This document shows positions 20,335-31,505 of a stretch of 64,000 nt of DNA, one piece after another. Under the pieces are notes generated by a model. That model was not told the DNA's origin. It saw only the letters and a list, made by a program, of their open reading frames with translations, and ran no database searches. Positions within the stretch are counted from its first letter, which is position 1, and the number at the start of each line of letters is the position of its first letter. The stretch comes from Paragordius varius (taxonomy: Eukaryota; Animalia; Nematomorpha), in contig OZ176056.1 of the NCBI GenBank assembly GCA_964247055.1, positions 5,704,001 to 5,768,000 of the forward strand. The letters are read 5' to 3'. The translations under genes and the position numbers were made by a program.

Positions 20335-31505
<11,171 letters not shown>

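Follow-up and report, generated by a model that had tools for sequence, protein, structure and literature searches.

A premature TAA in one of two DDX41 genes of Paragordius varius is probably a recent null mutation in a duplicated helicase gene

Results

A 15-exon DDX41 gene on the plus strand

The window analyzed here is a stretch of 64,000 nucleotides of the Paragordius varius contig OZ176056.1 (C7 in the assembly coordinates below). It contains a helicase gene, which we rebuilt from stop-free segments and splice sites. The resulting model has 15 exons on the plus strand, with GT-AG borders at every intron, and its coding sequence, which starts with the ATG at 20335 and ends with a TAA at 31503-31505, measures 1872 nt, or 623 codons plus the stop. 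We refer to this window gene as copy A and to a second locus on the same contig as copy B. The exons of copy A, together with the three introns discussed below, are as follows (window positions).

20335..20412, plus strand: exon 1, with the ATG at 20335
20413..20437, plus strand: intron 1, micro-intron of 25 nt with GT-AG borders; copy B retains it with 2 substitutions
20438..20660, plus strand: exon 2, from the exon model
20661..20686, plus strand: intron 2, micro-intron of 26 nt with GT-AG borders; copy B retains it with 1 substitution
20687..20822, plus strand: exon 3, matching human DDX41 residues 102-144
21947..22064, plus strand: exon 4, from the exon model
22521..22612, plus strand: exon 5, from the exon model
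23235..23388, plus strand: exon 6, with motif I (Pfam DEAD, E 2.5e-07)
23898..24034, plus strand: exon 7, matching human DDX41 residues 267-310
24139..24199, plus strand: exon 8, from the exon model
24604..24705, plus strand: exon 9, with motif II (DEAD), from the exon model
25166..25369, plus strand: exon 10, with motif III (SAT); 204 nt, the same sequence in both copies
25370..29538, plus strand: intron 10, 4169 nt
29539..29635, plus strand: exon 11, from the exon model
29927..30009, plus strand: exon 12, with the start of motif V, from the exon model
30300..30387, plus strand: exon 13, with the premature stop and most of motif VI; copy B exon 13 matches human residues 495-523
30777..30938, plus strand: exon 14, matching human DDX41 residues 525-576
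31369..31505, plus strand: exon 15, with the CCHC zinc knuckle (Pfam zf-CCHC, E 3.6e-05; human residues 579-622) and the natural TAA at 31503-31505

Introns 1 and 2, of 25 and 26 nt, stand beside other introns of 104-4169 nt.

The identity of the gene was assessed by searching exons 3, 7, 13, 14, and 15 singly against solved structures, using copy B as the source of the exon 13 query. Human DDX41 was the best solved match for all five exons. The exon 13 query matched human DDX41 in PDB entries 8c6j (chain CD) and 2p6n, with DDX3X and Vasa scoring lower, and exon 15 aligned end to end with human residues 579-622 (E 3e-18), the natural TAA coming right after the residue homologous to the last human residue. 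Exon 2 had no solved-structure match. In the exon translations, the DEAD-box core motifs I, II (DEAD), III (SAT), and VI are present in order, and motif VI is encoded within the open frame of copy B. Judged by these alignments, the gene is identified as a DDX41/Abstrakt DEAD-box helicase that appears nearer to DDX41 than to other DEAD-box helicases.

Several repeat-related elements lie around and within the gene:

19728..20298, strand not assigned: MITE-like repeat insertion of ~570 nt, in copy A only; copy B joins the flanks directly

This insertion ends 37 nt upstream of the copy A ATG and might affect the expression of that copy. It adjoins an older inverted end of the same MITE-like family that is common to both copies, and further copies of the repeat are found at window positions 54717-55308 and in the copy B region. 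Within intron 10, a reverse-transcriptase fragment (Pfam RVT_1, 26148-26402) is common to copy B. The same intron carries a tRNA-Gly(TCC) on the minus strand at 27522-27595, 74 nt long in copy A and 72 nt in copy B, which is either a true tRNA gene or the head of a SINE; a tRNA scan of the window and of one 10-kb locus returned one tRNA-Gly in each.

A single in-frame TAA interrupts exon 13

The first-pass annotation of this DNA had drawn attention to an in-frame TAA at codon 503 of 623, and our independently built 15-exon model places it at the same codon, at window positions 30321-30323 on the plus strand. Bases 30300-30387 agree with that first reading, and the exon is framed by an AG acceptor at 30298-30299 and a GT donor at 30388-30389. 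When all 15 exons of copy A were joined, codon 503 was the sole internal in-frame stop, in keeping with the earlier description of the remaining exons as open and in phase. An ungapped alignment made with exon 13 of copy B (residues 495-523) sets the TAA column opposite human Gln502. The position had been described as a conserved glutamine; the human residue and a CAA codon in copy B agree with this.

Most of motif VI is encoded 3' of the premature TAA in exon 13. Exon alignments and the Pfam zf-CCHC match also uphold the earlier observation that motif VI and the zinc knuckle are kept downstream and that the frame ends in a normal TAA at the homologous C terminus. From the premature TAA to the exon 13-14 junction is a distance of 64 nt, with a further junction beyond. 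These two junctions downstream of the stop make the copy A mRNA a plausible substrate of nonsense-mediated decay (NMD).

Removal of the TAA by a micro-intron or by alternative splicing was considered and rejected, as the only frame-keeping GT..AG segments spanning it delete 17 or 29 codons that match human DDX41 one to one. A second exon 13 was looked for within the 64-kb window and none was found. The claim that no intron or duplicate exon bypasses the stop thus stands.

Two features of the coding sequence bear on how such a stop can arise. Among the glutamine codons of copy B, 28 of 30 are CAA, each of them one C-to-T transition away from TAA. Stop-creating changes make up about 5% of all possible single substitutions in the DDX41 coding sequence.

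The window lies within a segmental duplication that carries an intact second DDX41

A search for a second DDX41 copy had been proposed as a check on the stop. The last exon, exon 10, and a 201-nt segment surrounding the stop were each used as nucleotide queries against the assembly, and every query revealed exactly two DDX41 loci; the second of them, copy B, is at C7:6149653-6161623, about 426 kb downstream of copy A. Copy B has 15 exons of identical lengths, keeps all GT-AG splice sites, and is fully open in frame; its codon homologous to codon 503 is CAA, with otherwise near-identical flanks. The first-pass annotation had paired an intact paralogue with a silent or degraded window copy as the outcome that would tell against its reading; of this pair, the intact paralogue exists. 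It had also hinted at a tie between a damaged spliceosomal helicase and the unusual introns of this genome, a suggestion that falls with the finding of copy B intact.

A segmental duplication of 127 kb or more, in direct orientation on the same contig, contains the whole window (1..64000) in its copy A. Block A covers at least C7:5654001-5780683 and block B at least C7:6082537-6201990, so that the two are about 300 kb apart. They are joined by collinear blastn blocks of 78-96% identity at an offset of about 422-428 kb; we put the identity of the duplication at about 92-95%. Many copy-specific insertions are present on both sides. A third copy of the left part, 96% identical, is found at C7:5885482-5890767. 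A simple tandem duplication was rejected, since the sequence just right of block A is unlike the expected start of a tandem unit. The duplication is rich in transposons. Its right end in block A is bracketed by 1.1-kb inverted repeats that are 100% identical (C7:5778737-5779832, minus strand, and C7:5781203-5782298, plus strand); this repeat is dispersed, with dozens of copies genome-wide at 82-97%.

The high identity between blocks A and B failed to discriminate exons when used as an exon finder. A filter for silent versus replacement differences, applied across the block, yielded, besides the DDX41 exons, no more than a few weak candidates, and the block is therefore gene-poor. Elsewhere in the window, an 800-nt block at 9100-9900 is about 99% identical between A and B, compared with 87-95% in its flanks. 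It holds a 120-codon open reading frame (9490-9852, plus strand) with 2 silent differences and 1 replacement difference between the copies and no Pfam match. Both copies have probably preserved this frame as a second intact gene.

Collinear blocks in the same orientation could also arise if A and B were diverged haplotypes of one locus, falsely duplicated in the assembly, in which case the TAA would be a heterozygous recessive null; the low dN/dS on both lineages, reported below, would likewise fit alleles of one essential gene. The blocks are, however, about 300 kb apart on one contig, the genome stretches examined contained no N bases, and a silent and intron divergence of 5-8% together with many copy-specific insertions is very high for alleles. 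Furthermore, part of the block exists in a third copy. PRP8 is normally a single-copy gene, and we found one PRP8 locus only; therefore, the assembly is not doubled as a whole, and haplotypes are generally collapsed in it. We consequently regard a false duplication as decidedly improbable.

At the PRP8 locus (C5:4192759-4194753), three exon matches were flagged with one TAG inside. By analogy with several DDX41 exons, which are preceded by the same arrangement, these TAGs most likely represent splice acceptors that fall in frame at the borders of exons.

Both copies show the signature of purifying selection

Copies A and B differ at 36 of 1872 coding bases, in 35 codons, of which 29 carry synonymous, 5 missense, and 1 nonsense differences. 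With codon 503 left out, the Nei-Gojobori method gave a dN of 0.0034 and a dS of 0.079 for the pair, hence a dN/dS of 0.043. Introns mismatch in 5.1% of aligned columns. Gene conversion of the exons was rejected, since silent divergence does not lie below intron divergence. Exon 10 (25166-25369) has zero differences between the copies, against roughly 3-4 silent differences expected at a dS of 0.08; its identity could reflect chance, local conversion, or constraint on silent sites.

Using human DDX41 as the outgroup, we polarized the missense differences as derived in copy A at codons 123 and 545 and in copy B at codons 311 and 567, codon 69 not being polarizable. With two derived missense changes in each copy, copy A has no excess of replacement changes. 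A 95% Poisson bound (~1470 replacement sites, 2-3 changes) limits neutral drift in copy A to at most about 11-13% of the lineage's time since the duplication. The relaxed constraint expected of a pseudogene lineage, with a dN/dS near 1, is not what the pair displays. The low dN/dS and the even split of derived missense changes argue that copy A was constrained until recently and that its stop is young; by this comparison of coding sequences, strong purifying selection acted on both copies for almost the entire period after the duplication.

These data also bear on the option that the first-pass annotation had ranked highest, namely a consensus error or a recent or heterozygous CAA-to-TAA allele, which is favored by the intact CAA paralogue and by the dN/dS of 0.043. 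Its two parts can be weighed separately. If the T were a consensus or base-calling error, copy A would truly read CAA and both DDX41 genes would be intact. One substitution as the sole defect in an otherwise strongly constrained gene is what such an error would leave, and because very many windows were scanned, rare errors tend to be selected. Against this, reads cross-mapped from the paralogue cannot supply the T, as copy B has a C at that base, and only about one in twenty random substitutions in the coding sequence would create a stop. Substitution errors are rare in modern assemblies, which also counts against an error here. We therefore hold a miscalled base to be unlikely and favor a real, recent CAA-to-TAA change.

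The TAA is poorly suited to recoding

The first-pass annotation had also raised programmed readthrough, U-to-C editing, and a context-dependent stop, none of which gained from our analysis: the paralogue lacks the stop, UAA is the least leaky of the stop codons, and TAA terminates both copies. Through insertion of glutamine at UAA-C, or through U-to-C editing of the mRNA, copy A could in principle yield a full-length helicase at a useful rate; one of the two DDX41 copies under selection would in that case be working at a translationally reduced level and would not be dead. The intact frame and motifs beyond the stop would fit such recoding, but the youth of the stop is enough to explain why the downstream frame is intact. 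Nor is the stop conserved, the paralogue having CAA. CARYYA is a known readthrough motif, and the CAT GTT that follows the stop misfits it. Neither does a fold of the spliced mRNA lend support, as the 93 nt from the stop onward fold no better than shuffled sequences (z = -1.1).

The sequence UAA-C had been called a leaky context, a description that holds for one of its two parts. A pyrimidine at +4 aids readthrough, and glutamine is, with Tyr and Lys, among the three residues whose insertion can suppress UAA (PMC7764779). On the other hand, readthrough follows the order UGA >= UAG > UAA, and UAA-N signals terminate most accurately (PMC7764779). Taken together, recoding of copy A appears highly improbable to us.

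A changed or context-dependent genetic code in which TAA specifies glutamine would account for a TAA exactly at a glutamine column. Yet TAA terminates both copies right after the residue homologous to the human C terminus, copy B writes its 30 glutamines as CAA or CAG and never as TAA, and the remaining exons are free of stops. The natural TAA at the homologous C terminus of both copies indicates that the genetic code is standard here, and we give almost no credence to a code change.

Discussion

Our analysis suggests that the TAA in exon 13 is probably a real and recent CAA-to-TAA change, which would make copy A a null allele or first-step pseudogene and leave copy B to carry the function. 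In the sequence of events that we propose, a segmental duplication gave rise to a pair of DDX41 genes, separated by about 426 kb on a single contig, and strong purifying selection acted on both almost throughout. A recent single C-to-T change would then have turned the window copy's CAA (Gln) into TAA. The product of copy A would have at most 502 residues, without motif VI and the zinc knuckle, and its mRNA, in which two exon junctions follow the stop, would be a likely NMD target. Copy A would thus be a null allele or a pseudogene that has only just begun to decay, whether fixed or still segregating, with DDX41 function supplied by the intact copy B. This reading infers three things: a genuine T in the DNA of the animal, a copy A product devoid of function, and expression of copy B. 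What speaks against loss of function is that copy A has no second disabling lesion apart from the repeat insertion upstream. Moreover, the loss of one copy may be non-neutral, as the dN/dS of 0.043 shows that both mattered until recently.

For annotation, we suggest marking the window copy as a probable null allele or nascent pseudogene, or else listing the base for a re-check, and taking copy B as the working DDX41. The case lends no support to recoding, to an altered code in this genome, or to the idea that damage to a spliceosomal helicase is connected with the micro-introns found here. It presents two DDX41 copies that strong purifying selection preserved while silent divergence grew to about 8%, until one of them took a clean nonsense hit. 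This pattern would fit selection against missense changes in a complex-forming helicase with nulls being tolerated.

Comparison with known systems

Compared with human DDX41 (PDB entries 8c6j chain CD, 2p6n, and 5gvr/5gvs), the P. varius gene is alike in the ungapped exons 3, 7, 13, 14, and 15. The human protein is 622 residues long and the P. varius protein 623, and they have in common the DEAD-box motifs, the C-terminal CCHC zinc knuckle, and a homologous last residue. Human DDX41 is encoded by one gene copy, whereas here there are two, and the stop at codon 503 truncates the window copy ahead of motif VI.

With the programmed readthrough of viral and cellular leaky stops, copy A shares an in-frame stop followed by C and an open, conserved downstream frame. 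It differs in that the stop is UAA, has no known downstream motif or significant structure, and is absent from the paralogue. The UAA/UAG-to-Gln codes of ciliates and other protists likewise have TAA at conserved glutamine positions; here, however, this is a single case in a gene that uses TAA as its working terminator and writes its other glutamines always as CAA or CAG.

The closest parallels are found in duplicated (non-processed) pseudogenes, which similarly have a segmental origin with introns and flanks, an intact paralogue, and a point nonsense lesion. Copy A departs from them in having one lesion and no relaxed constraint (dN/dS 0.043), which would place it at most at the very first step of decay, where the lesion may still segregate. 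We regard the finding as an ordinary one, most likely a very young null copy of a duplicated gene, of a known type, or else a base error, and not a new mode of reading stop codons.
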